Below are positions 1,640 to 60,831 of a DNA stretch of 64,000 bases, piece after piece. The notes below the pieces were generated by a model. It was not told the origin of the DNA. It ran no database searches and saw nothing but the letters and a program-made list of their open reading frames with translations. The translations under genes were made by a program, and so were the position numbers. The stretch is from the IMG/VR virus record IMGVR_UViG_3300035180_001778, positions 286,470-350,469 of that record. One strand, given 5' to 3'. How positions within the stretch are numbered: the first letter of the stretch is position 1; each line of letters starts with the position of its first letter.

Positions 1640-2524
1640 ATGATGAAGACCAGCACGATTGACCCCCGCGTCGAAGAGGCTCAGAAGGTTCTCCAGGACG
1701 GAATCGCCGCGCTAGTCGCTGGTGCCGACTGGAAGAAGTACCTGGAATTTCAAGCGAAATTCCACAACTACTCGCTCTGCAACACCTTCTGGCTGATGGC
1801 TCAGGCCATGCGCCGAGGGATCGAGATCAGCCAGTTCGCCGGGTTCAACACTTGGCGTGACGCGAAGCGCCAGGTCCGCAAGGGCGAGAAGGCGTTCCAG
1901 GTGCTCGCCCCCCTTCGCTACAAGCGCGAGGTCGTGAAGGACGGCACCAAGGAAAACGTATTCGGAATCCGTGGGTTCCGCGTCGCATCAACCTTCGACA
2001 TCTCGCAGACGGACGGCCCGGCCCTCCCCGAGATCGTGTCGCAGCTCCAGGGAACGAGCGAGGAGATCGAGGCGGTCTACGCCTCTCTCGTCAAGTTCTC
2101 CACGGAGATCAACAAGGTGCCCGTCCGTCGGGAAGTGCTCCCGGCCGGCACCAACGGGTACTACAGCCGCGAGGGCTTCATCGTGGTGTCGAGCACCATC
2201 AGTGGGCTCCAGGCGCTCAAGACGCTGGCTCACGAGATCGCCCACTCGATCCTGCACGAGAAGCTGGCCGACTGCCATGACCAGGTGTACCGCGAAGTCG
2301 AGGCCGAATCCACGGCCTTCGTGGTGCTCCACTCCCTCGGGTTCAGCGCGGAGTCCTACTCCTTCGGGTACGTGGCCGGCTGGTCCAAGGGTGACGCCAA
2401 GATCGTCAAGGAGGTCGCCGAGCGTGTCCAGCGGGCTGCGAAGACCATCCTCGGCTCCCTCGTGAAGCCGAAGACCTGGCAAGAGCACCTCGACGACGAC
2501 ATCCTCGAAGACAAGGCGGCGTGA
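1640..2524 (+). CDS. ArdC-like antirestriction protein (ssDNA-binding N-terminus + zincin metallopeptidase)
   Basis: FHNYS..N..L…AGF.TW….R.V.KGEK…FDISQT, HEIAH, EVEAES..FVV, Y..GW motifs. Confidence 0.85.
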   Translation: MMKTSTIDPRVEEAQKVLQDGIAALVAGADWKKYLEFQAKFHNYSLCNTFWLMAQAMRRGIEISQFAGFNTWRDAKRQVRKGEKAFQVLAPLRYKREVVKDGTKENVFGIRGFRVASTFDISQTDGPALPEIVSQLQGTSEEIEAVYASLVKFSTEINKVPVRREVLPAGTNGYYSREGFIVVSSTISGLQALKTLAHEIAHSILHEKLADCHDQVYREVEAESTAFVVLHSLGFSAESYSFGYVAGWSKGDAKIVKEVAERVQRAAKTILGSLVKPKTWQEHLDDDILEDKAA

Positions 2525-2558
2525 AAGAAGGGAGTCTGAGAAATCAGGCTCCCTTCTT
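2525..2558. terminator. intrinsic terminator-like hairpin
   Basis: AAGAAGGGAGTCTGA-GAAA-TCAGGCTCCCTTCTT directly after the stop. Confidence 0.8.
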
Positions 2559-2565
2559 CATTTCC

Positions 2566-2594
2566 GGTTGATCGACAGCTACCCCAGTCTGTAG
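2566..2594 (+). promoter_or_regulatory. promoter for tRNA-like RNA
   Basis: GGTTGATC-N16-TGTAG; RNA 5' G is 8 nt after TGTA. Confidence 0.85.
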
Positions 2595-2601
2595 TCTCCT
2601 T

Positions 2602-2753
2602 GCTGAGACGGCGGAGGTAGCTGGAACGCCCTGGAGCCTGCGACTTTCCTCGGAAGACTTTGGAGTTGCCCGCGTCGGTGACGAGATTGTCTGACCTCGG
2701 AGGGGGACAGAGGACAGGCCAGCTACGAGGGTTCGATTCCCTCTCTCAGTGCC
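2602..2753 (+). ncRNA. tRNA-like RNA with anticodon loop replaced by an ~80-nt structured insert
   Basis: Acceptor GCTGAGA/TCTCAGT; D-arm GCG/CGC with GG; T-arm GAGGG-TTCGATT-CCCTC; stem CTGG/CCAG; 3' G-CC then T-tract. Confidence 0.75.
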
Positions 2754-2837
2754 TTTTTCGGGATGCCTCGATCACCAACCCCTCGGTGAAGCCATCCTTC
2801 TGATTCTGATTCCCACCCATGCCACTCGGAGATCGAT

Positions 2838-3050
2838 ATGGACCAGCCTTGTACGATTATCATCCCCTGGGAGCCCGACGTCTGCATCCGCACCGTCTGG
2901 CATCCCAAGGCACCCACGGGCACCTTCAGCACCCTCAGCCGAGGGCACTTCGACACCAAGGCGGAAGCCCAGACTTGGGCGGATAGGCACCTCGGCCCCA
3001 AGGCGACCTACACGATCGTGAACATCGCCGACCTGCCCGGAACTCGCTGA
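2838..3050 (+). CDS. hypothetical protein
   Basis: 70-aa ORF with phage-like codon usage. Confidence 0.6.
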   Translation: MDQPCTIIIPWEPDVCIRTVWHPKAPTGTFSTLSRGHFDTKAEAQTWADRHLGPKATYTIVNIADLPGTR

Positions 3051-3057
3051 GGATGCC

Positions 3058-3303
3058 GTGAGCAAAGCGAACGGCGGTACGAAGAAGAGACGGTGGGCGA
3101 ACATGAAGCACGCCCACGAGATGCGTTGGGCATGTCCAGGGTGTGGGGGGAGCGTACACACTCCCCGCCAGCCCGTGTATGGCCCCTACTCCAGGAAGCT
3201 TGTGGAAGCTGAAATCCCATACCTTCCCTGGGGAAGCCCCTGCGCTGCTTGTATTCGAGCGTGGGGTGGACGACACCGCCGCCGCCGCCGCCCCACGCGC
3301 TGA
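3058..3303 (+). CDS. hypothetical protein (CxxC)
   Basis: 81-aa ORF filling the gap before the convergent dcd. Confidence 0.4.
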   Translation: MSKANGGTKKRRWANMKHAHEMRWACPGCGGSVHTPRQPVYGPYSRKLVEAEIPYLPWGSPCAACIRAWGGRHRRRRRPTR

Positions 3304-3927
3304 TCACTTCTCGAACTGACGCCAAGCCTGGCTGGCAACAGCCCCCTTGGCGTTTTCGTTCGTGTAGTGTCCGACCTTGTCGTAGGTCTTCCCGACGTGC
3401 CCCGAGATCGTGTGGAACCGGATCTGACAGATCCTCATGCCCGGGTAGACCTGGACCGGATGCACGCAGGTGACCTCCAGGGTGTATTGGCCGTTGAAGC
3501 CAGGATCCCCGTAGCCCGCCGTCTCGTGGACCTTGATGAAGAGGCGTCCAATCGAGGACTTCCCGTCGAGGACCGGAACGAAGTTGTTGGTATGCACCCG
3601 CTCCCGGGTGTGCATCAGATAGCCGATACCCGGCTTGAGGACCCAGCCCGCGATAGGGTCCATCTTGTACTTCGCGACCTCTTGAGGTGTCTTCGCGTCG
3701 AGAATCCCGGTTCTCCCTCCGTAGATGAAGCATCGCCCATCCTCAGTGGAATACGGCGACACTTCATTGTGGTAGACCACCGACGTGTAGACGGCGACTT
3801 CGTCCCCCAGGGTGAGGTCATAGCTCGCCGGGTTGAGCTGGTCCTTGTTGTAGGGGTCGATCTGAATACCCCCCTCCTCGACTTCCCCGCTGATTGCGTC
3901 CCCGGATAGAATCCCTGAGTTCATCAT
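3304..3927 (-). CDS. dcd: dCTP deaminase
   Basis: QLNPASYDLTLG, DGKSSIGRL, TAGYGDPGFNGQYTLE, GMRICQI motifs. Confidence 0.92.
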   Translation of the reverse strand: MMNSGILSGDAISGEVEEGGIQIDPYNKDQLNPASYDLTLGDEVAVYTSVVYHNEVSPYSTEDGRCFIYGGRTGILDAKTPQEVAKYKMDPIAGWVLKPGIGYLMHTRERVHTNNFVPVLDGKSSIGRLFIKVHETAGYGDPGFNGQYTLEVTCVHPVQVYPGMRICQIRFHTISGHVGKTYDKVGHYTNENAKGAVASQAWRQFEK

Positions 3928-3948
3928 CCGGGGCCACTACACCAGAAA

Positions 3949-4434
3949 CTACCAGGTGAGCACGATGCTGTAGTCTCTGCCCTGGTAGTCTTGGGCGTTC
4001 CTGGCGATCTTCACAGAGAGCCCGGACTCCTTGAGTTTGTCGAAGACCGCCCGGCCGATACCCGTGAGAGTGGTGGGATCCAGCATGGTCCAAGGGGAAC
4101 CCGAGACCTTGGTTGGCCACGCCTTGAAGTCGTCCCCGTAGACGAGGTGCATGACCAGGGATTGCTTCTCTCCCTTCGCAGCCTTCTTCCGTGCGGTCTC
4201 GGCGGACTTGGCGATGATCGTGTCGACACGCTTGAGTGCCGCAGCCCGCTTCTTGTCAGCCTGTGCCTGCTCTTTGAGCTTCTGCGCCACGGCCGCCGCT
4301 TGGGTCAGGGCTTGAAGCTCCTGAGTCGTGAGGGGGACTCTACCCGTTTGCTGGGGCGTAGTCGTGGCTTTGGGGGCCGGCTTCTGAGGCTTGTCCCAAA
4401 ATTCCTCCAGGGGGTCATCGTCCAGATTGGGCAT
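3949..4434 (-). CDS. hypothetical protein
   Basis: 161-aa ORF; GGTGTA-N10-ATG upstream. Confidence 0.75.
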   Translation of the reverse strand: MPNLDDDPLEEFWDKPQKPAPKATTTPQQTGRVPLTTQELQALTQAAAVAQKLKEQAQADKKRAAALKRVDTIIAKSAETARKKAAKGEKQSLVMHLVYGDDFKAWPTKVSGSPWTMLDPTTLTGIGRAVFDKLKESGLSVKIARNAQDYQGRDYSIVLTW

Positions 4435-4454
4435 GACCCCCTAATACACCGGAA

Positions 4455-4775
4455 TCAGCCTCGTTGCCCCGCGAATCCGCTGATCTGCTCGTGTCCCGAG
4501 CCGCCGTGGCACTTGCTCGAACCCGGGCCGAAGTAGCGGTCGTTCGAGCTGGTCCGGACACCGCGAACCTTCCGCGGGGGCAAGCGCTCGATCATGTTGA
4601 GCCCGAGCTTCTTGAGGCCCTGGATCACAGGGGTCGCGATCGAGTAACCCAGCTCGAAGGCCAAAGCCTCCGCCTCCGCGAAGCGGAAACTGGTACGGTC
4701 GTCTTCGAGCAGCTCATCGCAGAACGTGCCAAGCGCAGCGGAAACAACCTCGGCTTTGGGGGCAACGTCATTCAT
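4455..4775 (-). CDS. hypothetical protein
   Basis: Start set at ATG 4775 by promoter spacing. Confidence 0.75.
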   Translation of the reverse strand: MNDVAPKAEVVSAALGTFCDELLEDDRTSFRFAEAEALAFELGYSIATPVIQGLKKLGLNMIERLPPRKVRGVRTSSNDRYFGPGSSKCHGGSGHEQISGFAGQRG

Positions 4776-4782
4776 GCCCGAG

Positions 4783-4850
4783 GTACAAGACCCCAAGGGT
4801 CAGGATCAACCTGATTTTTCTTGTTGATCCTGACCCTTCATTCTCTGTAG
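4783..4850. promoter_or_regulatory. divergent promoter pair embedded in a 16-bp inverted repeat
   Basis: AAGGGTCAGGATCAAC (4795-4810) / GTTGATCCTGACCCTT (4823-4838); ATGs 4775 and 4858 both at N8. Confidence 0.85.
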
Positions 4851-4857
4851 GACCCCC

Positions 4858-5430
4858 ATGGACAGCATCGACCACAGCGAAGAAGGTTTCAACGTCGGCA
4901 CCACGTTCGCGAACGATACGTACCGGATTCACCGTTTCTACGGGTCCATCAAGATCACGCACCTCGTCAACGCCGGGAAGCGTGGCAAGAAGTGCCTCGA
5001 AATCTCGGTCTCGGGTCGTCGTGACGAGGTGGGTATGGAGTCGCTCGCGCTGGAGTTCAAGCTCCACGCGCTCCGAAACTGCCCGCTGGAGCGCATGCTC
5101 CAGGCTGTCCAGGAGGCCGTGGAAATCGGCTGCCAGACGTACCAAGAGGAGCTGCGCGGCATCGACGTGATCCCCGGCAACCTCAAGAGCTTCGAGATCA
5201 TCGGCGAGCACGTCTACATGAAAGCCAACGGTCTGGACTTCCTGGTTCGTAACCGGGACGACCAGAACAACGACCCGACCTCGATCCCCACCAACAAGAA
5301 GGCGGCCCCGCTTTTCTATGCCTGGGTCGTCAAGAACGAGGCGGCGATCCCCACGATGTCCTACCATGACGTACTGAAGGCGATGGACGCCCTCACTGTC
5401 GGATATCGTTCTTACTGCGCCGTGTATTGA
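4858..5430 (+). CDS. hypothetical protein
   Basis: 190-aa ORF at exact promoter spacing. Confidence 0.8.
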   Translation: MDSIDHSEEGFNVGTTFANDTYRIHRFYGSIKITHLVNAGKRGKKCLEISVSGRRDEVGMESLALEFKLHALRNCPLERMLQAVQEAVEIGCQTYQEELRGIDVIPGNLKSFEIIGEHVYMKANGLDFLVRNRDDQNNDPTSIPTNKKAAPLFYAWVVKNEAAIPTMSYHDVLKAMDALTVGYRSYCAVY

Positions 5431-5431
5431 G

Positions 5432-5719
5432 ATGTACTCCTACAACCGCACATCCTCCGACACCGGACGCGTCTCGAAGGCTCTCTCAGAAGTCCTTCGA
5501 GCGCTTCCGCAATTTCACGACATGGCGACCAAGCTCCGCCAAGACGCCAAGACCTACCTGGACGCGGCGGAAAGCTTCTCCTCGCACGACCAAGAGGCCA
5601 TGAAAGGCCTCGCTGATGAGGTCGTCATCGGCCGGGTTGGCGAGATGGTGAAGCACCTCGCGGCTCTCGAAAAAGAGCTGGAAGTTCTCCAGCGGATCAA
5701 TCCGCACGAAGATCGCTGA
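5432..5719 (+). CDS. hypothetical protein (MYSYNR start)
   Basis: 95-aa helical ORF abutting the upstream stop. Confidence 0.7.
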   Translation: MYSYNRTSSDTGRVSKALSEVLRALPQFHDMATKLRQDAKTYLDAAESFSSHDQEAMKGLADEVVIGRVGEMVKHLAALEKELEVLQRINPHEDR

Positions 5720-5761
5720 TCTGGTTGATCGGGGGCCGACCCCCCGTGTATTACCCTCACT

Positions 5762-5914
5762 ATGAAGGCTCCCAAGAATCGCACCCAGAAGGGTGCCCGG
5801 TCGCTCATCGTCCTCGGCATGATCCTCACCCGCAAGGGCGGCACGATGAAGCACAAGAACGCCCCCCGGGGCGGTGCCAAGAACAAGCAGGCCAAGTACC
5901 TGTCGGAGGCGTGA
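5762..5914 (+). CDS. 50-aa basic protein (not in ORF track)
   Basis: MKAPKNRTQKGARSLIVLGMILTRKGGTMKHKNAPRGGAKNKQAKYLSEA; promoter 5723-5751. Confidence 0.7.
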   Translation: MKAPKNRTQKGARSLIVLGMILTRKGGTMKHKNAPRGGAKNKQAKYLSEA

Positions 5915-5919
5915 AGAAA

Positions 5920-6132
5920 ATGGCAACGGAACACACGAACATTCTAGGCGGCTCGCGGGTTCTCCCCGTCAAAATCGCGACGGTGCTGAAGGCTCTGCTC
6001 CCATCCGAGCTTCAGCAGTTGAAAGACTACGTCGACTTCGTGGCCCAAGAGGCACACGAAGAAGGCTACGAAGAGGGAGTCAAGGCTGCCGAAGATCGGT
6101 CTTCGCGACCCTTGGTTGGCGAAGGGGACTGA
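5920..6132 (+). CDS. hypothetical protein
   Basis: 70-aa ORF MATEHTNIL…. Confidence 0.6.
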   Translation: MATEHTNILGGSRVLPVKIATVLKALLPSELQQLKDYVDFVAQEAHEEGYEEGVKAAEDRSSRPLVGEGD

Positions 6133-6133
6133 C

Positions 6134-6904
6134 ATGAAACGAACCCTGGTAATCGGAGACGTCCACGGGTGTCTCCACGAGCTGCAAGACCTCCTCCTCA
6201 AATTGGGGTACACCCAAGGGGAGGATCGTCTCGTTTTCCTCGGCGACTTGATCGACAAGGGGCCGGATCCCGTTGGCGTGGTCAAGCTCGCTCGCCTGCT
6301 CAAGGCGGAGTGTATCCTCGGCAACCACGAGGAGTCAGCACTCCGGTGGCGTCGTCATGAGGCTCGCTGCCTCAAGGACCCGAAGTACAAGAACCCGATG
6401 AGAGAAATCTCGGATGAACTGCGAGAGCAGTGGTCCGGCCTCTCAGAGGAAGATGACGCCTGGCTGCGAAGTCTGCCGCTCACCCTGGATCTCGGGAACG
6501 ATATCGTCGCGGTTCACGCGGGCTTTCTTCCTGGTCTGTCGATCGTCGAGCAGCCGGCAGACAAGATCCTGCGTCTTCGCTGGGTCGATGCCGCCGGGAA
6601 GATGGTCCCGCTCCAGGAAGACACCATGGCGGCTCCCGAAGGAGCCCGCGAATGGATGGGCGCCTGGGATGGGAACCACCACGTCATCTATGGGCACGCA
6701 GTACACAGCCTGGAGGTGCCGAAGCTCGTCACAACCGCACATGGGTACGAGACGATCGGAATCGATACGGGCTGTGTTTTTGGGGGGCACCTGACCGCTG
6801 CGGTTGTCGACAAACCCAAAGGGGAATCGGCGCGAATCACCCTCGTCCAGGTGAAAGCCCGGCGAGCGTACCGTGAAGTCCCCCCCGGGACCTTCAACCC
6901 GTAG
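6134..6904 (+). CDS. metallophosphoesterase (PrpA/ApaH/PrpE-like)
   Basis: GDVHG, GDLIDKG, GNHE, HAG, GH, GIDTGC motifs. Confidence 0.9.
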   Translation: MKRTLVIGDVHGCLHELQDLLLKLGYTQGEDRLVFLGDLIDKGPDPVGVVKLARLLKAECILGNHEESALRWRRHEARCLKDPKYKNPMREISDELREQWSGLSEEDDAWLRSLPLTLDLGNDIVAVHAGFLPGLSIVEQPADKILRLRWVDAAGKMVPLQEDTMAAPEGAREWMGAWDGNHHVIYGHAVHSLEVPKLVTTAHGYETIGIDTGCVFGGHLTAAVVDKPKGESARITLVQVKARRAYREVPPGTFNP

Positions 6905-7085
6905 CAGCCAACTTCCGAGGCTGGAACTGGACTTGAGGCTGAGGCTTGGGTTCCGGAGGTGTTGAAGACCTCCGGATGACCTCCGTGTAGAGGGCCTCCG
7001 TCAGCATCTTGGTTGCAGCGGTCGTTGCAGCCAAAGCCTCCATCGAGTCTTGTTCTTCACGGCTAATGCACATGGGTTTACTCAC
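6894..7085 (-). CDS. hypothetical protein
   Basis: 63-aa ORF in a minus-strand run. Confidence 0.45.
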   Translation of the reverse strand: MSKPMCISREEQDSMEALAATTAATKMLTEALYTEVIRRSSTPPEPKPQPQVQFQPRKLAATG

Positions 7086-7106
7086 AGTCTCGCCTGTTGT
7101 AAGGGT

Positions 7107-7634
7107 TTACGGACGCGGCGGAAGTCGAGGCTGAGGGATATCCAGGGCAGCCATCACGCCCCGGAGCATTGCGTTGACGGCAATGATCTCCTCTCGGAGC
7201 CGGATGATTTCCTTGGCGCGCTCTTTCATGTCCGTATCGTAGTCCGCACGAGACACGTAGTCATCGTCGAGGCCATCCTCAACGCGCTTCGTCCTCTCGG
7301 CCACGGTCCGGATCTTGTTCTCCAGCTCCTCGACGACTTCGAGGTTCAAGCCAGATTGCGTACGGCTCCGAGTCAGGAGCTTGGAGACCCACGTCGGAGG
7401 GGCATCCTCGAAGGCGTCAAAGTCCTTCCGGAGACGTCGGACCAGCTCTTCCACCGTGTAGAGGGCAAGAGACATCCCCGTCCGAGGGTCGGTTTCAACC
7501 CCAAGACGTTTCTCCATGTCCGAGACCCTCTTCTTGAGGTCCGCCTGAGTCCCAAAAAACGTCGTGCCCGCGGCCGTGCCTCCAGCCAACAGGCCGGTCA
7601 CAATGCTTTTGACGAGTTCTACCGTGTCCGACAT
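7107..7634 (-). CDS. N-terminally anchored coiled-coil protein
   Basis: Hydrophobic N-terminus followed by heptad-like helical sequence. Confidence 0.7.
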   Translation of the reverse strand: MSDTVELVKSIVTGLLAGGTAAGTTFFGTQADLKKRVSDMEKRLGVETDPRTGMSLALYTVEELVRRLRKDFDAFEDAPPTWVSKLLTRSRTQSGLNLEVVEELENKIRTVAERTKRVEDGLDDDYVSRADYDTDMKERAKEIIRLREEIIAVNAMLRGVMAALDIPQPRLPPRP

Positions 7635-7639
7635 AGCCG

Positions 7640-8176
7640 TTACCCACCCGGTTGGAAGCAGCGGAGACATCGAGGCTCGTACGCCTCAGCACCACCGACG
7701 AGGACCGTTGCCTCACTCTGGATGAGGCGATAAGAGCGACATGCGGAATTTCCGCAGACCGCACAGCGGGATCGCAACTTTCGAACCTCATCCGCGTGAG
7801 CCATGAATGTAGGGAGATGTCCGAAAGGCACCCCCTTCCAGGTCAGGTCGAGCCCTGCAAGGACTACGGAAACCCCTGATAGGATCACATTCAGGACAGC
7901 CGGGACTGCTTCGGCAGAGAGAAACTGGGCTTCGTCGATAGCTATGATGTCGGCACTTGTGGGTAGAGGGAAGGCATCAGGGGAGAGCCAATTCGCGTGG
8001 CACCGGATCCCCTCGTGCGAAATCACCTCGGCCTCAGCATGCCGGGTATCTGTGATCGGCTTGTAGACTTCGACGCTCTTGCCCAGTTTTTCCATCTGGT
8101 GAACCACAGCAAGAAGCGCCGTGGTCTTCCCAGCGAACATGGGGCCCGCGATTACAGTAAGTCGGCCGATTCTCAT
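7640..8176 (-). CDS. tdk: thymidine kinase
   Basis: GPMFAGKTT, IDEAQF, AGLD..WKG.PF, C..CG…YEPRC..C motifs. Confidence 0.93.
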   Translation of the reverse strand: MRIGRLTVIAGPMFAGKTTALLAVVHQMEKLGKSVEVYKPITDTRHAEAEVISHEGIRCHANWLSPDAFPLPTSADIIAIDEAQFLSAEAVPAVLNVILSGVSVVLAGLDLTWKGVPFGHLPTFMAHADEVRKLRSRCAVCGNSACRSYRLIQSEATVLVGGAEAYEPRCLRCFQPGG

Positions 8177-8213
8177 CTGCCGAAGACGGGTCACAAAAGG
8201 AAACCACGGAAAT

Positions 8214-8426
8214 CTACTCAAGATCGTCGAGGAGATGCTCCCAGCCGGTCGGTCTCTTGTCCGCCAGCTCTTGGAGCATCCCGATCTGGAATTCTTTCGC
8301 TTCTTCCTTCGTGATGTTTCCACTGGCGTACTCGTACTCGACGCAGGGACACGAGCGGAACATGATCCGCCCGTTGCAAACGGGGCAGCGGACGGGAGGG
8401 CAATTCTTCCGTCCGTCTCGCATCAT
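8214..8426 (-). CDS. Cys-rich small protein with W-tail
   Basis: CPVC..CPC; ATGA overlap with upstream gene; ends RPTGWEHLLDDLE. Confidence 0.75.
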   Translation of the reverse strand: MMRDGRKNCPPVRCPVCNGRIMFRSCPCVEYEYASGNITKEEAKEFQIGMLQELADKRPTGWEHLLDDLE

Positions 8427-16927: not shown

Positions 16928-17456
16928 CAGACCCGAGCCTCCTCGATAGCCTGCGTCTCCGCCGCCTTCATCACGAGCCGGGCCAGATGCCAGGTCATGG
17001 GGGCGGGGCCGCCAGCAAGCCACGCGGTGACCGCTGCCCGCGTCCAGGAGCCAGCCGCGAGGCTGGCATACTCCTCGATGGCCTGGAGGATGTTCGTGAC
17101 CGAGGGGCCGTTCTCGGGGCCACACAGAGCGCCTCCATGCTCTGGTACGTCCGACCCCGAAGAGCCACGTACGCCAGCATGAGGTAACGAGCCGTGTCGC
17201 CTTCGAGCCGCTTGTTGTCCCAGAGCGCGTACCGCGCCGGGCCCGTTTCCGGCCGGTGGAAGGGCTTCAGGTCCTTCTTACCGGGAGAAGGGTAGTTCGT
17301 CCCGCGGGTCAATTCCCGACCCTGACGGACCTTCGCCAGCTCCTCGATCCCGCCAGCCTTCCACTTGAGGCTGTTGATGTCGTTCCGGATGCCCCGGATG
17401 ACTTCGTTCTGGTTCTTGATGTCCTGCTTCAACGCCGCCGCATTCATGTTCTTCAT
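16927..17456 (-). CDS. hypothetical protein (R.LMLAY.ALRGR.Y..ME), apparent 2-nt frameshift near 17125
   Basis: Removing a TG from CTCTGTGTGGCC gives a 175-aa ORF ending …QAIEEARV. Confidence 0.7.
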
Positions 17457-17554
17457 GATCTCTCTCCTGTAATTTGTTCGGAAGTGACCGGACACGAACC
17501 AGGAAAGGGCGGGGCGCGAGCGACTTGGTGTATTCAGGCTTCGTAGAACTTCAT
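17453..17554 (-). promoter_or_regulatory. leader ORF with internal UGA and RAPP motif
   Basis: AAGGTAGGT SD; ATG AAG TTC TAC GAA GCC TGA ATA CAC CAA GTC GCT CGC GCC CCG CCC…TCA TGA overlapping ATG 17456. Confidence 0.7.
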
Positions 17555-17587
17555 GGTGGACCTACCTTACGGAGTTTTTGGGGGCTG

Positions 17588-17842
17588 TCAAGAAAAGATA
17601 TCGTCTTCGAGTAGGACTGTCCAAGCGGTCGGCCTGTGGGTTCTGTCCCACTCCCACAAAAGCTTGAGGTCGAGGTGAATGGGCTGGAAGCCCTGCTTGT
17701 CCCGCTGCTTGCTGACGAAGAAGCTCATCGTGCTGGAGGACGGCATGGGGGTGTCTCGATGTAGACGGACCACCATTGAGGTGTCGTACAAGATCGAGGC
17801 ACCGCCCGGAATGCGGTCATTCTGGTTAGGCACCGATCTCAT
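17588..17842 (-). CDS. hypothetical protein with W-tail
   Basis: Ends RPTAWTVLLEDDIFS. Confidence 0.65.
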   Translation of the reverse strand: MRSVPNQNDRIPGGASILYDTSMVVRLHRDTPMPSSSTMSFFVSKQRDKQGFQPIHLDLKLLWEWDRTHRPTAWTVLLEDDIFS

Positions 17843-18098
17843 CCTCTTTCAAGATTACAGCCCAAGCCGTCGTAGACTTCTTGAGTGGCTTCTTGGGCTT
17901 ACCTCTTCTCGGGAGGAGGTAAACGAAACCCCCTCGGGGTCCACCTCCAGGAAGCCGTTGAAGCTCCTTGCTTTGGCAAAGGAGCCTGAGACATGAAGAC
18001 ACGGACGCGACGTTCCCGCCGATGTGCCTTGCGATCTCTGTGGCGGTCCAACCTTCATGGACTGCCACAGAAGCCAGGATGTCGGTCCGGATGCTCAC
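17826..18098 (-). CDS. winged-HTH protein with W-tail
   Basis: TATEIARHIG…VSSCLRLL…G.VYLL; ends TTAWAVILKEDEIGA. Confidence 0.7.
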   Translation of the reverse strand: MSIRTDILASVAVHEGWTATEIARHIGGNVASVSSCLRLLCQSKELQRLPGGGPRGGFVYLLPRRGKPKKPLKKSTTAWAVILKEDEIGA

Positions 18099-18406
18099 GC
18101 AGAACCGACGGTCTGGGACCCGCCGAAGATCCTGTCGTAGTTCTGCCGGTATGCCGGGGTGGCGACCTGCGCCGGGCCGTGACGGTACTCATCGACGACC
18201 TTGAAGCCGGGGCCGTTCTCGCGGGCCTCCAGGGTCATCATGGTGGCGCCTTCCGGGATGGGCTGTCCATCTTTGACGTCGACCACCGTCCCGAAGGACA
18301 CCTCGCAGCCGGAGGTGTGCCGAATCGCAGGACGCATGCCGTTCCCGAGATCCGGGCCGAGCATGACCACATCTTCCATCGGGCACTTTTTCTCGTCGTT
18401 GCTCAT
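18095..18406 (-). CDS. hypothetical protein
   Basis: GGTGTA-N10-ATG; …GPAQVATPAYRQNYDRIFG. Confidence 0.8.
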   Translation of the reverse strand: MSNDEKKCPMEDVVMLGPDLGNGMRPAIRHTSGCEVSFGTVVDVKDGQPIPEGATMMTLEARENGPGFKVVDEYRHGPAQVATPAYRQNYDRIFGGSQTVGSA

Positions 18407-18444
18407 GCTAGTAGAGTACACCAAAGCCCTTGGTGTAGAGGCGG

Positions 18445-19851
18445 TTGAACCACAAAACGACCACCCGAAAGATCACGATGCCCGAAGGTAACCCCCAACT
18501 CTGTGAGATTTGGGAGACATCCGATGCCCTGCGAGGATCGACAATCCGTTGTGTTGTCGGTGATGTAGCTCCGAACGCCATCACGTTCGTGAGCCTGGCA
18601 GGGAACCGTACGCGCATCCCGGCGATCCGCATGGCCGGCTGGCATTTCGTGCAGAGCCCTCCCCCCAATCTGATGTCCTGCTCGCGTCGTGGGTGCCGCC
18701 TCCCGGGGCTTCTACGTTTCGAGCGAGGGATAACCCCCGAATGGGTCTGCGCTCGGCACATGCCCGTTGGAACCCGAGCCACGCTCGACCTCGTGCCGCG
18801 TCCCAACCAAGACCCTCCCACTCTCGAAACCCCGATCATCATCTGCGCCGCCTGTGAGGGTGACAACCCCGTCCAGGATGCGAACGTTCTCATTGGTCGG
18901 GACGACATCGAGATGTGGTTCTGCCAGCGGTGCAACAACGTCTGGGGGATCGTTCTCGAAGAGAACACGCGCGACAGGGCTGTACCGCTTACATCGCGTG
19001 AACTCGCCACATGGTACAGCTCCCGAGTGCGGCTCCTCGTGGAAGCCATGGAACGGGGCGGCCGACACCCGACCCATGTCGAGGTGTCGGCGACTGTGTG
19101 GACTTTGCTGTATGATGCACACAACGAAGCCACTTTCATGTTGTACGGGATTCCTGCCCGGCGAGTCCTGGACTTTCTATCTCCAGACACTCGGCGCGCA
19201 ATGGTGACGTTGCAGACTCGGGACGCGATTCGCTCGGCGGCTCTTCCTGTGTCGCGGCTCGGCAGCGTCCCGAACCGCTCTCCAGAGATCACGGGCAATA
19301 ACCCGCTCCTGACCTGGGTTCAGGAGCAACGCACCATTCGAGCCCTCCCTCAGCCGACCCCTATGCCCCCTCCCGAGAAGACAGTCAGGTTGGAAGAACA
19401 GATGGGGATCCCTACGATGGGGTCCACATGGGTCAACCGTGGGACTGGGGTGCTCATCGAGGTGACGGGCCTATCGTTTGCCGAAGGCACACAACAGATC
19501 ATTCAGTTCAGAGCCGTTCTGGTGGCTGAATCGAATATCCGAGAACCTCACTCGCGTCTTGGCTATGATGACTTCGTCACGCTGCATCGCGTCTGGCACA
19601 ACGACGGAAAGACCGAGATGCCCTACTTGGACCTCGGTCTACAGCTCGGCGACGAATGGATTCAGAACCATAATCGGGTCGTGGTCGAGATCCTGCACAT
19701 CGACCACAAGAAGGAGACCGTCTCGGTCTACGAGAAAGACACGAAACGTCGCTCCGCCCTGAAGATGCGAGAGTTCGCACCTGGCGGTAACTGGCGGAAG
19801 ATCGTCCGTCGCACGGCCTTTGAAGCCCTGGAGGATGACGACTTCGGCTGA
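18445..19851 (+). CDS. multi-domain hypothetical protein with acidic tail
   Basis: 468 aa with Cys clusters; ends RRTAFEALEDDDFG. Confidence 0.8.
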   Translation: MNHKTTTRKITMPEGNPQLCEIWETSDALRGSTIRCVVGDVAPNAITFVSLAGNRTRIPAIRMAGWHFVQSPPPNLMSCSRRGCRLPGLLRFERGITPEWVCARHMPVGTRATLDLVPRPNQDPPTLETPIIICAACEGDNPVQDANVLIGRDDIEMWFCQRCNNVWGIVLEENTRDRAVPLTSRELATWYSSRVRLLVEAMERGGRHPTHVEVSATVWTLLYDAHNEATFMLYGIPARRVLDFLSPDTRRAMVTLQTRDAIRSAALPVSRLGSVPNRSPEITGNNPLLTWVQEQRTIRALPQPTPMPPPEKTVRLEEQMGIPTMGSTWVNRGTGVLIEVTGLSFAEGTQQIIQFRAVLVAESNIREPHSRLGYDDFVTLHRVWHNDGKTEMPYLDLGLQLGDEWIQNHNRVVVEILHIDHKKETVSVYEKDTKRRSALKMREFAPGGNWRKIVRRTAFEALEDDDFG

Positions 19852-19852: not shown

Positions 19853-20101
19853 CTACTCGAAGTCCACGTCGAGCTGGTCGAGCAGGGTCTTCCTCGGCGG
19901 CTTAGCAGTGGATCGCCAAGTGTCGGTTTGGGGGAGATCCGCTTCGAATACCGTACCCGCACCGAAGACTCGTTTGACCTTGCCTCCTTTGATCGTGCAT
20001 TCCACGACCTGTGCCGAGGAGCCATTGACCGTCAGCACGTAATACAACTTGCCGTCGGGGCTCTTGTAGACAGTCTTGGGCTTGATCTCGTCTTTGGGCA
20101 T
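19853..20101 (-). CDS. hypothetical protein with tail variant
   Basis: Ends PRKTLLDQLDVDFE. Confidence 0.75.
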   Translation of the reverse strand: MPKDEIKPKTVYKSPDGKLYYVLTVNGSSAQVVECTIKGGKVKRVFGAGTVFEADLPQTDTWRSTAKPPRKTLLDQLDVDFE

Positions 20102-20537: not shown

Positions 20538-20701
20538 TCGGCTGCGGGGTAGGAGTTGTGGTGGGTGACCGCGGTATTCAAGACGACGCGAGACTTCCCC
20601 GTGTAGCGCTCCTTGCCGTGCTCGTTCACCTCGACCTCATACTCGGCGTAGGAGTTGCTCGACACATGAGAGCGCTGGACGAACCAGTAGGTCTCTTTCA
20701 C
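20525..20701 (-). CDS. hypothetical protein
   Basis: 58 aa; GTGA overlap with upstream stop. Confidence 0.6.
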   Translation of the reverse strand: MKETYWFVQRSHVSSNSYAEYEVEVNEHGKERYTGKSRVVLNTAVTHHNSYPAAECPK

Positions 20702-41908: not shown

Positions 41909-41949
41909 GGTCCCCTCCCTACAGATCGAGCGCTTCTCGGATCAACCGA

Positions 41950-47358: not shown

Positions 47359-47562
47359 ATGGCCATCAAACCGCACGATTACGGTGCCGATGGGGGTTGC
47401 AATCGCTGCTCCCACGACTCGTTCTCCTCGTATTCCTATGGGTGCGAGGAGAACCCCAAGAAGATTCTCGACCGGCGTCTAGGGATGGTCGAGAATCCCA
47501 AATATCAAGCTCCTACTGTCTGGGAGCGCCTCGACAAGGACCTCTCCGACACGAAGGAATGA
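47359..47562 (+). CDS. Cys small protein with W-tail
   Basis: CNRC; ends APTVWERLDKDLSDTKE. Confidence 0.75.
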   Translation: MAIKPHDYGADGGCNRCSHDSFSSYSYGCEENPKKILDRRLGMVENPKYQAPTVWERLDKDLSDTKE

Positions 47563-51355: not shown

Positions 51356-51778
51356 ATGACAGGACGTGCGGGACAGGTCATGGGCGAGACGGCAGAGCTT
51401 CTCGCGTCGCTCTGCTTCGAGGTGTGTCCCAACAGGATGCCATCCTGTGTGACTTCAGTACGGCGTGCAACACAAGAAGAGGACCACCAAGGGATTGACC
51501 TCGTGGTCGTCATCGACGCCGGCATCTTGAATGTTCAGGTGAAGTCGAGCTGGAAGCGAGCCCAAGAGTTCAAGAAGAAGCACCCCGACATCCCCGTGCT
51601 TGTGGTTCACCCCGAGGACTCCGAGGAGCACGTTCGCAGGAACCTCTTGAGCATTCTGGGGCAAGAGCGTGCGAAGCTCGTTCCGGGGTACACAGCGAAG
51701 CCGCCGCGTGGGGACAGAGGCAAAACGACGAAGGCGATCCCCCTGATGTTCTCTTTGGGGGATCGCCTTCGTCGTTAG
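51356..51778 (+). CDS. PD-(D/E)XK nuclease-like protein
   Basis: ED.QGIDL…NVQVKS; start uncertain. Confidence 0.65.
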   Translation: MTGRAGQVMGETAELLASLCFEVCPNRMPSCVTSVRRATQEEDHQGIDLVVVIDAGILNVQVKSSWKRAQEFKKKHPDIPVLVVHPEDSEEHVRRNLLSILGQERAKLVPGYTAKPPRGDRGKTTKAIPLMFSLGDRLRR

Positions 51779-52080
51779 AAGTCGTCGTCTTCGTCGAGCA
51801 CTTCCCACGCTGTGGGAGGCTTCACTTCTCCGAAGGGGCGCCAGAGGATGCGTCCCTTGCGGAAGACCGCAACGTCAACAAGCCCGAGATCCCATCTCTG
51901 ATACCACAGGGTATTGCCGAGAGTCTGAGCCTCCAGGAGGAGGCTGAAGCGGCCCATCATCTGGGGCACCACCAGATCCCCATAGTCGAGGCCCACAGAC
52001 CTCCAAGGAAGACGCCCGACAAGCAGTGCCCTCCCTTTCCCTTGGAGGCGGACTTTGACCGAGTAGCTTCGGATGGGCAT
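51775..52080 (-). CDS. hypothetical protein with W-tail
   Basis: Ends PPTAWEVLDEDDDF. Confidence 0.7.
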   Translation of the reverse strand: MPIRSYSVKVRLQGKGRALLVGRLPWRSVGLDYGDLVVPQMMGRFSLLLEAQTLGNTLWYQRWDLGLVDVAVFRKGRILWRPFGEVKPPTAWEVLDEDDDF

Positions 52081-53894: not shown

Positions 53895-53899
53895 TCTCC

Positions 53900-54999: not shown

Positions 55000-55002
55000 G
55001 GC

Positions 55003-56339: not shown

Positions 56340-57026
56340 GTGGATCTGAGGGGGCGGGGTCAACCGCTCATCCTGACCCTCCGCGAGGGCTGTGACATCG
56401 GCGCTCTTTTGAGCGAGCGGCCGTACGAGAACATCATCCCCGTGCGGGTCTGGGATAATTTCGAGATGGGGGAGGTTGCTCGGAACACTCCTTCCCTGCC
56501 CTTCTACTTGATGACGGCGTTGAATGCTGTCGTTGAGAGTCGGACTCGGAATCGCCGTTTCAATGACGATTCCGAGTCCGTGCGAGACGCCTGGCGGCAG
56601 TACGTGAACGTCATGTCGCATACGACCCGTGGCGTCCGTAGAGACCTCGACCCCGAGTCTTATGCCGTCGAACTCGAACAGTCGATGCGGGCTGCGACAG
56701 ACAGCCACACGGTCTGGTACGAATACGTGAACACAGCCCCGGAATTTCTCGCGTCGGGGATGCGCGTCCGGGATCAAAATCCCCTGTTTGTCTTCGCGTT
56801 CGAGGACATGCACCTTGCGCCTCAATCAGAACATGAACTGCGGCGGGCGCTTCGACAACTCAGCCACCCTCGGCTTTGCTACGTCTTTTCGAGGACTGGG
56901 GAATACAGGGTCGATCATGGGTGCTGTCCGATCGAAGCTCCTGTGCAGGTTGCGACCCCGGCGAAGCCCGTCGTTCCCCATCTCTCGACGTTCGGCCGCG
57001 CGCTCTTGGGGGAGGATGAATTTTGA
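56340..57026 (+). CDS. hypothetical protein
   Basis: 228 aa; ends STFGRALLGEDEF. Confidence 0.7.
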   Translation: MDLRGRGQPLILTLREGCDIGALLSERPYENIIPVRVWDNFEMGEVARNTPSLPFYLMTALNAVVESRTRNRRFNDDSESVRDAWRQYVNVMSHTTRGVRRDLDPESYAVELEQSMRAATDSHTVWYEYVNTAPEFLASGMRVRDQNPLFVFAFEDMHLAPQSEHELRRALRQLSHPRLCYVFSRTGEYRVDHGCCPIEAPVQVATPAKPVVPHLSTFGRALLGEDEF

Positions 57027-57247: not shown

Positions 57248-57265
57248 GTGGTGTAAAGGTATCCC

Positions 57266-58051: not shown

Positions 58052-58073
58052 ACCCCAGAAAGCATCGAATCTC

Positions 58074-58919: not shown

Positions 58920-58921
58920 CA

Positions 58922-59113
58922 GTGCCTAAATCCCCCTACCGTGAAGCCCCAAAAGTCCCTCGGACTCCAATCCGATGCTGTTGGGGGTATCACAGATGGT
59001 ACATCGATTCGCGTCGGATCGAGTCGAGGCAACCCTTGGGGGCTAAGGTGCAAGTGACCCTTAGATTGTGCATGTTCTGCACGCGAGAATGGAAAGAAGA
59101 AGTAGAACTGTGA
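58922..59113 (+). CDS. small Cys/His protein
   Basis: CCWGYHRW…CMFC; GTGA-coupled. Confidence 0.55.
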   Translation: MPKSPYREAPKVPRTPIRCCWGYHRWYIDSRRIESRQPLGAKVQVTLRLCMFCTREWKEEVEL

Positions 59114-59946
59114 CGGCCCCTTTGACCCCCGAAGAAGAAGCGTCCTGTCACATTCACATCTGGCGGTGCAAGGGGCGAACAGCCTCGGGGAACGACTACG
59201 AGGGACACCTCCATGCCGAACCCGGAGGCTATGACGTCGGGTTCGGCATGATCCCGCTCAATACCCAGCTCCCCTTCGCAACCTTCGAGGAGGCAAAGGA
59301 GTATTGCCTGGCGTTCCAATTCATGCTGGGGGTGGTGATCAAGGCTCTCCGAAAAGGGCCTTGCGACAACGGCCTCCCTACGAACCTCAAGGACTTGAAT
59401 GAGGTCGATATCTTCGGGGGACGTGACGCCCACATCGCAGCCGAGGAGTGGCTCAAGAACGTCGAGGGCTTCGACGCCAAATACCAGGTGATCGGCGACC
59501 TCCGGAAGTGTCGCTATGGGTGGATCGCTCGATGGGGCACCCAGGAAGCTTGGCACGAGTGGGGCGGCAAATCGGACTGGTATCGCTGGGAGGGGGAATG
59601 CCCTCCCTACAACAGGGAGCACAACTTCCTGTTGGTGGTGCCTCCCACGGGGAAGGTGTACCAGCTCACCTGGGGATTGACCTTGGAGAGCATGTACACG
59701 GAACTGCTGAAAGAGTTCCCCGAGATCACGCAAGTCTACGGGGTCAGTCCCGACTACGACCTCCTCATGACGGCTGGGATCGCGGATTTCCAGGCTTCCA
59801 ATGCGGTGGCGGGGAGCCCGGTCTACCTTCGGCAAGTCCACGCGGATGCCATGCGGAAGAGCTTCAACCCGAAGTACCGTGTGGAAGTTCTGACTACTCT
59901 CCGCCGGCTCGCATTGGCCGCGGGGGTGGATCTGAGCATTCCCTGA
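59110..59946 (+). CDS. hypothetical protein
   Basis: 278-aa ORF. Confidence 0.75.
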   Translation: MTAPLTPEEEASCHIHIWRCKGRTASGNDYEGHLHAEPGGYDVGFGMIPLNTQLPFATFEEAKEYCLAFQFMLGVVIKALRKGPCDNGLPTNLKDLNEVDIFGGRDAHIAAEEWLKNVEGFDAKYQVIGDLRKCRYGWIARWGTQEAWHEWGGKSDWYRWEGECPPYNREHNFLLVVPPTGKVYQLTWGLTLESMYTELLKEFPEITQVYGVSPDYDLLMTAGIADFQASNAVAGSPVYLRQVHADAMRKSFNPKYRVEVLTTLRRLALAAGVDLSIP

Positions 59947-59970
59947 AGAATTTGTGGTAGACCTCTTGAC

Positions 59971-60144
59971 ATGACTACCAAGATCAAGACCGACGTGTGC
60001 CTCAACTGCGGAGCCCCCGCATACACCACCAAAGGGGGCACCACGGTTCCCTTGTGCTCCTCGTGTGCCGGGAAGACGAGCCCGGCGAGAGGCGTCAAGA
60101 TGGTGGGCACCCCCAAGACGAAGCTGCCCCCGAATCCGGTGTAG
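59971..60144 (+). CDS. 57-aa Zn-finger protein (not in ORF track)
   Basis: CLNCG…CSSC. Confidence 0.65.
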   Translation: MTTKIKTDVCLNCGAPAYTTKGGTTVPLCSSCAGKTSPARGVKMVGTPKTKLPPNPV

Positions 60145-60153
60145 AGGGGAGGG

Positions 60154-60831
60154 ATGCCTCGCTTCTACTGCGTCCAGTATCGTGCGTCCCGAGCTGGGTG
60201 GGTCGATCTCCCGTCCCTCGCTTCTGTGCATGAGCATGAGGCGATTCAAAGCAGCCACACCTTCTCAGAGATGAATGGTGTGTGTACGCGAGTGATTCGC
60301 AAGCCCCACGGTTGGGTGCCTGTCGTGACGACCCCTGCGATTGAAAGCCCCGTTCGAACGGGGCTTTCAATCGCAGGGGCTCTACGTCATCTGCGGCAAG
60401 AAGGCCTCACCTGTCAGTCGAGAGATCCTAACTTGACGGGTGTCTCTCTCCACATCATGGGAGGGCCACGTACCTCTATCGCAGGAGGCATCTTGTTGTA
60501 CCATGATGCCTTCAGCATTTTCCAGTCCGAGGAGGGAGAGGACTTTGAGGTGGGCTTCGTTGGGGCGCAGGGACGACCTGACCGCGATGTCCACGTTGCT
60601 ACTTTGGTTCAAGCGGTCGGCACCGTTCTCGAAGAATACGCTAACCGCCGTCCTCCTTGGGTTGACGGTGTCGAGCTTCAAGCTGCGAATACCCCGTCTC
60701 TCACAGACGCTCAGCTCCGGCGACGTGACGAAAAACTGCGTCGTCGAGCTGAAGCGGAGTACAATCGACGTCCCACATTTTGGGATCAGCTCGATTCCCC
60801 CGAGTTCGGTGTAAACCCAAAAGGTGACTGA
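60154..60831 (+). CDS. hypothetical protein with W-tail
   Basis: GGTGTA-N10-ATG; ends RPTFWDQLDSPEFGVNPKGD. Confidence 0.7.
   Translation: MPRFYCVQYRASRAGWVDLPSLASVHEHEAIQSSHTFSEMNGVCTRVIRKPHGWVPVVTTPAIESPVRTGLSIAGALRHLRQEGLTCQSRDPNLTGVSLHIMGGPRTSIAGGILLYHDAFSIFQSEEGEDFEVGFVGAQGRPDRDVHVATLVQAVGTVLEEYANRRPPWVDGVELQAANTPSLTDAQLRRRDEKLRRRAEAEYNRRPTFWDQLDSPEFGVNPKGD

Follow-up and report, generated by a model that had tools for sequence, protein, structure and literature searches.

Short peptides appended to otherwise unrelated proteins and docking them on a common partner are represented by several described systems. In phage T4, the internal proteins IPI-III and Alt, a diverse, fast-evolving set of mostly anti-defence proteins, share only the capsid targeting sequence (CTS), an N-terminal propeptide of roughly 10 residues that is sufficient to direct them to one destination. 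The CTS binds the scaffolding core and is removed by the gp21 protease at an L/I-x-E site (A/G/S-x-E in giant phages). Ten residues suffice, and positions 4 and 7 are critical (PMC9026906). Encapsulin cargo-loading peptides are C-terminal peptides of about 10 residues on flexible linkers, which are shared by unrelated enzymes and dock on the inner face of an HK97-fold shell. The acidic C-terminal tails of SSB proteins (E. coli SSB-Ct; T7 gp2.5 and gp4) consist of an acidic run ending in an aromatic or aliphatic residue after a flexible linker. Clamp-binding tails (bacterial QL[SD]LF; those of T4 gp43, gp33 and gp55 for gp45; the PIP-box) are short, often C-terminal, hydrophobic and acidic peptides by which several unrelated proteins dock on one ring-shaped hub. 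The SspB C-terminal ClpX-binding peptide and the chemoreceptor NWETF pentapeptide are short C-terminal tethers following a domain and a long flexible linker.

Here, we describe a C-terminal peptide borne by about one in eight proteins encoded in a 64,000-nucleotide stretch (the window), which is the last 64 kb of a 350,469-bp IMG/VR contig (IMGVR_UViG_3300035180_001778, positions 286,470 to 350,469) of an uncultured huge phage known only from metagenomes. Related giant phages also keep the peptide, which looks like an undescribed docking or address tag.

A shared C-terminal peptide on unrelated proteins

A sequence-only reading of the window had claimed that about 16 unrelated proteins end in a common peptide (T/S-x-W-E/D-x-L-acidic), and this observation is confirmed: all 14 main copies and the three variants are present at the gene ends. 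The peptide can be written as T(0)-[A/W]-[W/x]-[E/D](+3)-x-L(+5)-[L/D]-acidic(2-3)-[F/L/I]; it usually follows a Pro/Lys/Arg linker and is located 6-18 residues from the stop. The features are as follows (window coordinates; strand in parentheses).

2474-2524 (+), tag TWQEHLDDDILEDKAA ending the ArdC-like protein (gene 1631-2524)
8214-8249 (-), tag TGWEHLLDDLE ending a 70-aa Cys-rich protein (8214-8426)
8423-8443 (-), tag TVWEQL ending the RlaP-family nucleotidyltransferase (8423-9577)
9597-9629 (-), tag SWWEYLDESF ending a 222-232-aa protein (9597-10295), predicted helical module plus small beta-barrel
11513-11533 (+), tag TAWEQL ending a 96-aa Cys-rich protein (11243-11533)
15692-15764 (+), 73-nt tRNA with anticodon UCA, which reads UGA
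17588-17629 (-), tag TAWTVLLEDDIFS ending an 81-aa protein (17588-17833)
17826-17870 (-), tag TAWAVILKEDEIGA ending a 90-aa putative HTH protein (17826-18098)
19813-19851 (+), variant tag TAFEALEDDDFG (F in place of W) ending a 468-aa multi-Cys protein (18445-19851)
19853-19888 (-), variant tag TLLDQLDVDFE (no aromatic residue) ending an 82-aa protein (19853-20101)
20698-20733 (-), tag TAWEALLVEDL ending a 138-aa Cys-rich protein (20698-21114)
24308-24340 (-), tag AAWDRLDDEL ending a 132-aa protein with an N-terminal hydrophobic anchor (24308-24706)
29671-29673 (+), in-frame TGA separating gene 29140-29673 from its tagged extension
29800-29820 (+), tag LLWDQL at the end of a 48-codon in-frame extension (29674-29820) of gene 29140-29673
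31205-31243 (-), tag SAWKRLLKEDDL ending a 96-aa protein (31205-31495)
47515-47562 (+), tag TVWERLDKDLSDTKE ending a 67-aa Cys-rich protein (47359-47562)
51775-51813 (-), tag TAWEVLDEDDDF ending a 73-aa protein (51775-51996)
56988-57026 (+), variant tag TFGRALLGEDEF ending a 228-aa protein (56340-57026)
60775-60831 (+), tag TFWDQLDSPEFGVNPKGD ending a 225-aa protein (60154-60831)

When aligned on the Thr, the ArdC-like tail KTWQEHLDDD is in the same register, with W at +1 instead of +2. In contrast to the sequence-only reading, the copy at 29820 is not the end of an independent gene (see below). Of the carriers named in that reading, the ArdC protein (ArdC-N plus M78 peptidase) and the RlaP nucleotidyltransferase are confirmed, and one protein with an N-terminal hydrophobic anchor is found (24308-24706), whereas the wHTH assignment for 17826-18098 rests only on weak hits.

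The peptide is strongly enriched at C-termini, a point that had been set as a test beforehand. The pattern [TSA]xWxxL occurs 11 times in the last 20 residues of 134 called genes, against 5 times in 14,986 internal positions (Fisher p=1.5e-7), and a stricter pattern hits 8 of 290 six-frame ORFs in the window, against 1 of 3,144 in 1.2 Mb of unrelated viral contigs (p=2e-8). Synonymous codons differ between copies, the copies lie on both strands and all three stop codons are used, which is inconsistent with a DNA-level repeat. When the last 20 residues are removed, the carriers show no significant pairwise similarity (best E=0.086).

Conservation and distribution in related phages

At least 12 more tags lie elsewhere in the same genome, and tags also occur in several related huge phages. 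In a distant one (GC 48%; locus L268), 9 of 27 neighbouring genes end in a variant, P-T-R-F-E-R-[I/L]. Tails similar to that of 19853-20101, SILDQLGEFPY and RILEQLGDFPY, occur in the loci L144 and L251, and the variant of 56340-57026 (STPF[GS]KALLDD..IG) is found on two other proteins of the same genome. RlaP genes in the loci L238 and L267 lack the tag.

In diverged ortholog pairs (29-63% identity overall), the last 14 residues are 71-86% identical, while the preceding 30 residues are only 27-47% identical; thus the tag stays conserved while the linker drifts. In the family of 9597-10265, 28 of the top 150 representatives, clustered at 50% identity, keep the tag, and the family consensus ends in xxxWERxLxD. 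Conversely, only this phage's ArdC carries the tag among 120 listed homologs, including ones at 47-61% identity on 350-377-kb contigs, indicating modular gain. Its tail is the only one that ends in AA, and that end is ancestral to its family. In AF2 models, tails are helical with pLDDT of about 50 and follow cores above 90; this holds for the ArdC-like protein, in which the tail is a helix beyond the core.

Comparison with described docking peptides

As in the T4 CTS, the peptide is shared by otherwise unrelated, fast-evolving proteins of one phage, and the chemistry is similar, with a Thr, an aromatic residue, Glu and an aliphatic residue on a short helix. The CTS is reported to read K-T-Y-Q-E-F-I (Mullaney and Black, 1996), which resembles the K-T-W-Q-E-H-L register found here. 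Unlike the CTS, all copies are C-terminal and the helix is followed by an acidic run. There is no consistent protease site: only 7 of 28 tags have [A/G/S] at +1 together with E at +3, and none has L/I-x-E.

Location at the C-terminus on a flexible linker is shared with encapsulin cargo-loading peptides, but the encapsulin consensus (G-S-L-x-I-G-S-L-K-type, Gly/Ser/Leu/Ile-rich with a basic end) is unrelated, and encapsulin cargo genes sit next to the shell gene, whereas these carriers are scattered over a 350-kb genome. The one carrier with a weak 'major head protein' PHROG hit models as helices plus a small beta-barrel, with no significant PDB match.

The analogy with the SSB tail, proposed in the sequence-only reading, holds only loosely. 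Shared with it is an acidic run ending in an aromatic or aliphatic residue, at the extreme C-terminus, after a flexible linker. SSB-Ct is borne by an OB-fold SSB after a Gly/Pro-rich linker and ends in D-D-D-[I/L]-P-F with the Phe carboxylate free, whereas the carriers here are an ArdC-like protein, RlaP, Zn-ribbon-like proteins and others, and their ends vary (F, FS, FG, FE, L, LE, IGA, ...KGD, with up to 8 further residues, or nothing after the helix) without Pro-Phe-COOH. Three copies stop straight after the helix, so the acidic tip is optional and the Thr-capped W/L helix, which SSB tails lack, is the core. In addition, in SSB the tail is on the hub and many clients bind it, whereas here many clients carry the tail.

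The tag also differs from the bacterial clamp-binding motif (Q-L-[S/D]-L-F or Q-L-x-L-x-L): Gln is found at +4 in 9 of 28 tags, the conserved residues are T, W, E and L instead, the number of carriers is far larger, and PolA, LigA and the delta and delta-prime subunits of the same phage lack the tag. The ends are acidic-hydrophobic rather than non-polar as in ssrA/ClpX C-motif degrons (L-A-A-COOH). NWETF even shares a W-E-x-hydrophobic core, but NWETF and the SspB peptide are each a one-family solution in cellular proteins, whereas the carriers here are dozens of unrelated phage proteins, and no ClpX or CheR link was found.

Possible roles of the tag

These features are best explained by a modular C-terminal docking or sorting peptide consisting of a Pro/Lys/Arg-rich flexible linker, a Thr-capped helix (T-x-x-E is the classical capping box) that would put W(+1/+2), L(+5) and L(+6) on one face, an acidic run and often a final F, L or I. 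In this view, the peptide has been added to many unrelated accessory proteins of a group of huge phages and would tether them all to one common partner that co-evolves with it, the lineage consensus being TAWExL here and TRFER[I/L] in the distant relative. The analysis itself establishes the motif with its enrichment and position, purifying selection on the peptide, lineage-specific gain, location outside the folded domains and wide distribution among huge phages; binding to a single partner is an inference, which we consider likely, and the identity of the partner and the presence of carriers in virions are also inferred, with much less confidence. The interpretation of the sequence-only reading, a short linear motif that recruits cargo to one hub such as a capsid interior, phage compartment, protease or host RNAP/clamp, is therefore partly supported: selection on the peptide rather than the DNA, an appendage outside the folded domain with helical propensity and specificity to a group of phages all fit such a motif, but none of the hubs listed could be confirmed.

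Our single best, though tentative, guess for the partner is the interior of the assembling head (scaffold or core, or the inner capsid surface). The tag would then be a cargo or capsid-targeting signal, loading anti-defence and nucleic-acid enzymes into the virion for injection with the DNA, namely the ArdC-like protein, the RlaP nucleotidyltransferase and possibly the Dam-type methylase, as the CTS does for T4 internal proteins. Giant phages package more than 50 different head proteins (PMC10052503), the carriers include an ArdC-like anti-restriction protein and an RNA-repair enzyme, and carrier bodies are slightly more basic than those of untagged proteins (p about 0.06-0.09). However, no receptor was found, and no capsid, scaffold or prohead-protease gene of this phage was seen, so nothing links the tag to head assembly directly. 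Three tagged genes are co-transcribed with a thymidine kinase, and tagged genes share the promoter-like motif of the RIIA-like gene and the dCTP deaminase operon, which does not look like a late class. The membrane anchor of one carrier, the C-terminal location and the proportion of tagged genes in the L268 region, a third, which is a lot for virion cargo, also speak against this reading.

Alternatively, the tag might dock accessory nucleic-acid proteins on a cytoplasmic DNA-associated platform, such as a sliding clamp loaded by the phage's own delta and delta-prime subunits or an SSB- or ParB-like hub. Every carrier that has an annotation acts on nucleic acids, including RNase HII with the tail LLSWEVDL, a Dam-type methylase with the variant tail PFAYMNALMEEF and the putative HTH protein; archaeal and eukaryotic RNase HII carry a C-terminal PIP-box, the phage encodes clamp-loader subunits, and Gln is the commonest residue at +4, giving QLD..L or QLDVDF strings. 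This possibility is rather unlikely, as DnaB, RecA and RecD2 are untagged in addition to the proteins above, no clamp gene was found, three tags end at QL, the RNase HII and Dam tails are off-register variants, and ten to thirty percent of accessory proteins is a lot for a clamp. A degron or adaptor tail recognised by a host or phage AAA+ protease or unfoldase, which would clear early proteins on schedule or bring host targets to degradation as SspB does, seems about equally unlikely. The domain-linker-peptide architecture, the apparently non-late operons, the membrane-anchored carrier, the conservation of tails on fast-evolving bodies and the presence of classic-clade AAA ATPases in the phage are compatible with it, but the acidic, Trp-containing tail resembles no known bacterial degron and no protease partner was seen. 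The local AAA ATPase (34910-36163) has full-length relatives next to terminase and portal genes in a Sorangium prophage and in an 84-kb phage contig, and neither has any tag.

Import into, or retention in, a phage-built compartment such as a nucleus-like shell or a replication factory is more doubtful. Huge phages build compartments (PMC11087766), a large share of proteins carries the tag and the annotated carriers are DNA- or RNA-directed enzymes, but the replication machinery that would need import is untagged, one carrier is membrane-anchored, and no shell gene was seen in the approximately half of the genome that was sampled. Phosphorylation-dependent docking, in which a phage Ser/Thr kinase would modify the near-invariant Thr and an FHA-like module would read pT-x-x-[E/D], could be combined with any of these hubs but is very unlikely. 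Thr occupies position 0 in 21 of 28 tags, against Ser in 3, which is more selective than helix capping alone needs, an acidic residue is at +3 in 22 of 28, and the phage encodes a Pkinase-family protein; however, T-x-x-E is also the plain capping box, no FHA domain was seen in any locus annotation, and Pro at -1 is not a known kinase preference. A role in cis without a common partner, as a DNA-mimicking auto-inhibitory or solubilising acidic tail, is similarly improbable: acidic tails do fold back on DNA-binding surfaces in SSB-type proteins, but the same T/W/E/L pattern is on unrelated folds and conserved across families and phages, and three tags have no acidic part. A chance or compositional effect is excluded by the enrichment analyses.

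Nearly all genes of huge phages are unannotated, and a shared tag groups dozens of them into one functional class and provides a handle that can be tested directly. If the partner is the head interior, the tag would mark the injected arsenal of these phages and could serve as a portable signal for loading cargo into particles; if it is a protease, clamp or compartment, it would reveal a hub of phage cell biology that has not been described. The variants TAWExL and TRFERI provide a natural experiment, in which covariation might point to the receptor. More speculatively, a broad group of huge phages might use a proteome-scale C-terminal address peptide on 10-30% of their accessory proteins, co-evolving with its receptor and sorting cargo to one destination such as the head interior or a compartment; this remains possible rather than probable, as does the reading that at least one protein would receive the address only when the phage's own UGA-reading tRNA reads through an in-frame TGA.

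A putative read-through carrier

The tag at 29800-29820 would be added to the product of gene 29140-29673 only by read-through of the in-frame TGA, and the UCA-anticodon tRNA encoded by the phage is a candidate agent. This would constitute a switch between an untagged and a tagged isoform and could link stop-codon suppression by a phage tRNA to protein sorting. The extension has a coding score of +27.9 and a GC3 of 0.92, against about -30 in the other frames. The TGA is present in both assemblies, and it is the only such site in the window.

Genomic context

The stretch under study belongs to a genome of 350,469 bp (JGI Ga0373631_0000004), of which it forms the last 64 kb, and its GC content is about 60%. 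The 442-aa and 548-aa proteins of the window are encoded with 100% identity on the 350,469-bp contig IMGVR_UViG_3300035180_001778, and the coordinates place the window at positions 286,470-350,469 of that contig. A sister sample holds the same genome as a 234-kb contig and a 128-kb contig with identical genes, and the 234-kb contig ends within about 10 bp of the same point as the window (position 64000), which is either a real genome end or a shared assembly break. No cultured phage or plasmid is closely related. Genes recognised in the window, on the basis of heuristic gene calls, encode an ArdC-like protein, an RlaP nucleotidyltransferase, an AAA ATPase, an RIIA-like GHKL ATPase, a ParB-like protein, a metallophosphoesterase, a Bax1-I membrane protein, dCTP deaminase, a baseplate-J-like fragment, thymidine kinase, an ITPase-like NTPase, an HD protein and a GmrSD_N-like protein. 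Elsewhere the same genome encodes PolA, DnaB, SNF2 and UvrD helicases, topoisomerase IB, a Dam-type methylase, RNase HII, clamp-loader delta and delta-prime, RNR, LigA, RecA, a GroEL-like chaperonin, NAMPT, adenylosuccinate synthetase and a Ser/Thr kinase. This is a huge phage.

A common C-terminal peptide

The observation made in the sequence-only reading, that unrelated proteins share a C-terminal peptide tag, holds: every copy listed there is located at the gene end given for it. Alignment on the Thr places all copies in one register, including the tail of the ArdC-like protein. The distance from position 0 to the C-terminus is 6-18 residues, with a median of 11. T-x-x-E is the classical helix capping box, and W at +1 or +2, together with L at +5 and +6, falls on one face of a helix.

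Residues of the tag by position, aligned on the Thr (position 0); counts are from 28 tags of this genome
Position -2: P or R (16)
Position -1: P, K or R (19)
Position 0: T (21), S (3)
Position +1: A (11) or W (5)
Position +2: W (20)
Position +3: E or D (22)
Position +4: Q, H, V or R
Position +5: L (25)
Position +6: L or D
Positions +7 to +9: mostly D or E
Thereafter: F, L, I or the stop

The tag is enriched at C-termini over internal positions (p=1.5e-7) and in comparison with 1.2 Mb of unrelated viral contigs (p=2e-8). Codons differ between copies and all three stop codons follow the tag, and a DNA repeat is therefore rejected as the explanation. Paralogy of the carriers is likewise rejected, because the carriers are unrelated once the tail is removed.

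Selection on the peptide

Selection acts on the peptide. In ortholog pairs between this phage and a 275-kb relative that have drifted to 29-63% identity, the last 14 residues stay 71-86% identical, whereas the 30 residues preceding them are only 27-47% identical. In the ArdC family, the other 119 homologs listed lack the tail, including homologs at 47-61% identity on 350-377-kb contigs with the same gene order, indicating that the tag was added in this lineage. The family of gene 9597-10265 shows the opposite case, an old tag. Among the top 150 representatives of this family, clustered at 50% identity, 28 end in the tag, examples being ...SVWERILGDDFVDD, ...TAWEKLCLEDDPFEV and ...TRFERILMDDD, and the family consensus itself ends in xxxWERxLxD. 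AF2 models of two carriers place the tail as a low-confidence helix beyond a confident core.

Distribution among huge phages

In the same genome, outside the window, at least 12 more canonical tags were found in the roughly 125 kb examined, about half of the whole 350-kb contig having been sampled. Off-register variants occur on RNase HII (LLSWEVDL) and on the Dam-type methylase (PFAYMNALMEEF). Tags also occur in a 275-kb IMG/VR contig, in a 377-kb root-metagenome contig, in a 437-kb contig, which has two copies and shares a homolog of window gene 20109-20528, and in a 252-kb contig. A 235-kb NCBI huge-phage contig carries the tag on one family member only, and a syntenic 20-kb stretch of a 350-kb Logan contig has none. 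Tag-rich genomes are this phage, IMG/VR 3300020122_000238, rootH2_10001975, 3300037297_000066 and ERR4702564_3426, whereas the relative SRR8954568_1891 is tag-poor. A pattern scan of IMG/VR for PTAWExL returned mostly an unrelated conserved internal motif of about 4-kb RNA-phage-like contigs.

The most telling case is the GC-48% contig ERR4702564_3426 (Logan), in which nine of 27 neighbouring genes (positions 1601-19554 of locus L268, the stretch of this contig analysed) end in a variant in the same register, P-T-R-F-E-R-[I/L or other], followed by acidic residues and then V/I. The same stretch holds a Cas12f/TnpB-like gene, a NADAR gene and a cREC_REC gene. The system thus spans distant huge phages and its consensus shifts by lineage, as a co-evolving receptor would produce.

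Tagged and untagged proteins

Most carriers are small proteins without annotation, several of them Cys-rich, and the annotated ones act on nucleic acids. Pfam and PHROG scans of 20 further tagged proteins gave almost nothing. PolA, DnaB, SNF2, UvrD, TopoIB, LigA, RecA, RecD2, delta, delta-prime, RNR, the chaperonin, both AAA ATPases, TK, dCTP deaminase and the RIIA-like protein are untagged. Tagged genes lie in operons with untagged ones, and three tagged genes precede the thymidine kinase gene in one transcription unit.

The operon at 7107-10950 (minus strand) contains a 122-aa protein, the 9597 family member, RlaP, a Zn-ribbon protein and thymidine kinase. In an NCBI huge-phage contig the same family sits between RtcB and a Ro60-like vWA protein, RlaP and TK; it is therefore part of an RNA-repair cassette. 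An HK97-like capsid nature of carrier 9597-10265 is not borne out by its structure model, for which the best PDB matches are Tudor/SH3/Sm-like barrels at E of 0.04 or worse.

Candidate partners of the tag

The local AAA+ ATPase (34910-36163, minus strand) is of the Cdc48 type, has a single domain, ends in RPTWLV and has a full-length ortholog in the TRFERI phage, ERR4702564_3426. However, its relatives in a Sorangium prophage and an 84-kb phage contig sit directly upstream of terminase and portal genes, in loci without tags, and it is therefore not a tag-specific partner. The closest cellular relative of this ATPase lies in the prophage of Sorangium sp. So ce134, directly upstream of the large terminase and a Mu-type portal, which hints at a packaging-related role and at a Myxococcota-like host range for the wider gene pool. 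A clamp as the hub is not supported, as delta, delta-prime, LigA and PolA of this phage are untagged and delta contains no tag-like motif. The ends of the tags do not fit the SSB C-terminal tail, and the residues do not fit a prohead-protease site. In the same genome, a 296-aa protein (positions 15734-16624 of locus L265, at about 226-227 kb of the contig) has a Gly-rich C-terminal stretch ending in GGDFTDLLDQV and lies next to RecD2-, RuvC- and RecA-like genes; its architecture resembles an SSB with an acidic tip, but no family match was found.

The motif, its enrichment at C-termini and its conservation as a peptide are shown directly by the sequence comparisons, whereas binding to a partner and the identity of that partner are inferred. 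It is likely that the tag is a docking or sorting peptide for one partner. The sequence-only reading, which took the tag to be a docking motif recruiting cargo to a single hub by analogy with the SSB tail, is supported only in part, as none of the hubs examined is confirmed. Targeting of cargo to the head interior is placed first, but only tentatively, because it has an exact precedent: the internal proteins of T4 are a diverse anti-defence set united only by a 10-residue capsid targeting sequence. The T4 sequence is similar in chemistry to the tag. Giant phages also package dozens of proteins. This reading is weakened by the C-terminal position of the tag, the lack of a cleavage site, the apparently non-late operon context and one membrane-anchored carrier. 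A DNA-associated platform and a protease or unfoldase, for which the tag would be a degron or an adaptor, are somewhat less likely and are ranked equally, and a phage-built compartment is unlikely. A phospho-Thr switch using the phage's own kinase could be layered on any of these.

Shared targeting or docking peptides are already known as a kind of feature. This motif, its C-terminal position, its scale and its spread among huge phages were not found in the literature that could be searched, and no equivalent has been found described there.

Possible conditional tagging by read-through

One tagged gene end follows an in-frame stop codon, and the phage encodes a tRNA that could read it. The features concerned are as follows.

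29140-29673, plus strand: gene ending in TGA
29671-29673, plus strand: the in-frame TGA
29674-29820, plus strand: in-frame extension of 48 codons ending in LLWDQL followed by TAG
15692-15764, plus strand: 73-nt tRNA with anticodon UCA

The 48 codons following the TGA have a strong coding signal, with a score of +27.9 and GC3 of 0.92, against about -30 in the other frames. Both assemblies have the TGA, and it is the only stop in the window that is flanked by coding signal on both sides without a nearby restart. This might represent programmed read-through, although a recent nonsense mutation cannot be excluded. The tRNA is called tRNA-SeC by ARAGORN although it is too short for one; it is a UGA-reading suppressor-type tRNA in a genome where TGA ends 91 of 132 called genes. 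General recoding of TGA is rejected, because of this frequent use of TGA as a stop and because only one in-frame TGA is flanked by coding signal on both sides. Read-through would yield a tagged long isoform.

Other sequence features of the window

A bipartite promoter-like motif, GGTTGATC-N15-CTGTAG, ends 7-13 nt before start codons and occurs 29 times in the window with at most one mismatch, against 0.01 expected. Examples of the 29 sites are as follows.

866-894, minus strand
11914-11942, plus strand
12221-12249, plus strand
28598-28626, plus strand
30446-30474, minus strand
32818-32846, minus strand
41919-41947, minus strand
62655-62683, plus strand

The motif is shared with the 275-kb relative and occurs five times, with at most one mismatch, in the analysed locus (L237) of the 377-kb root contig. 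Many copies leave no room for a Shine-Dalgarno sequence (CTGTAG GACCCCC ATG), which suggests very short or absent leaders and a phage-specific sigma factor or polymerase.

The baseplate-J-like fragment is a 228-aa ORF (36331-37017, plus strand) that matches only the middle of the Baseplate_J profile (positions 31-178 of 255) and ends in TAG, with no evident continuation. It could be a fragment or a diverged small baseplate protein inside an otherwise non-structural region. At 13844-13883, a 10-nt unit, TCTCCCTGCA, is repeated in tandem about four times between two small genes.
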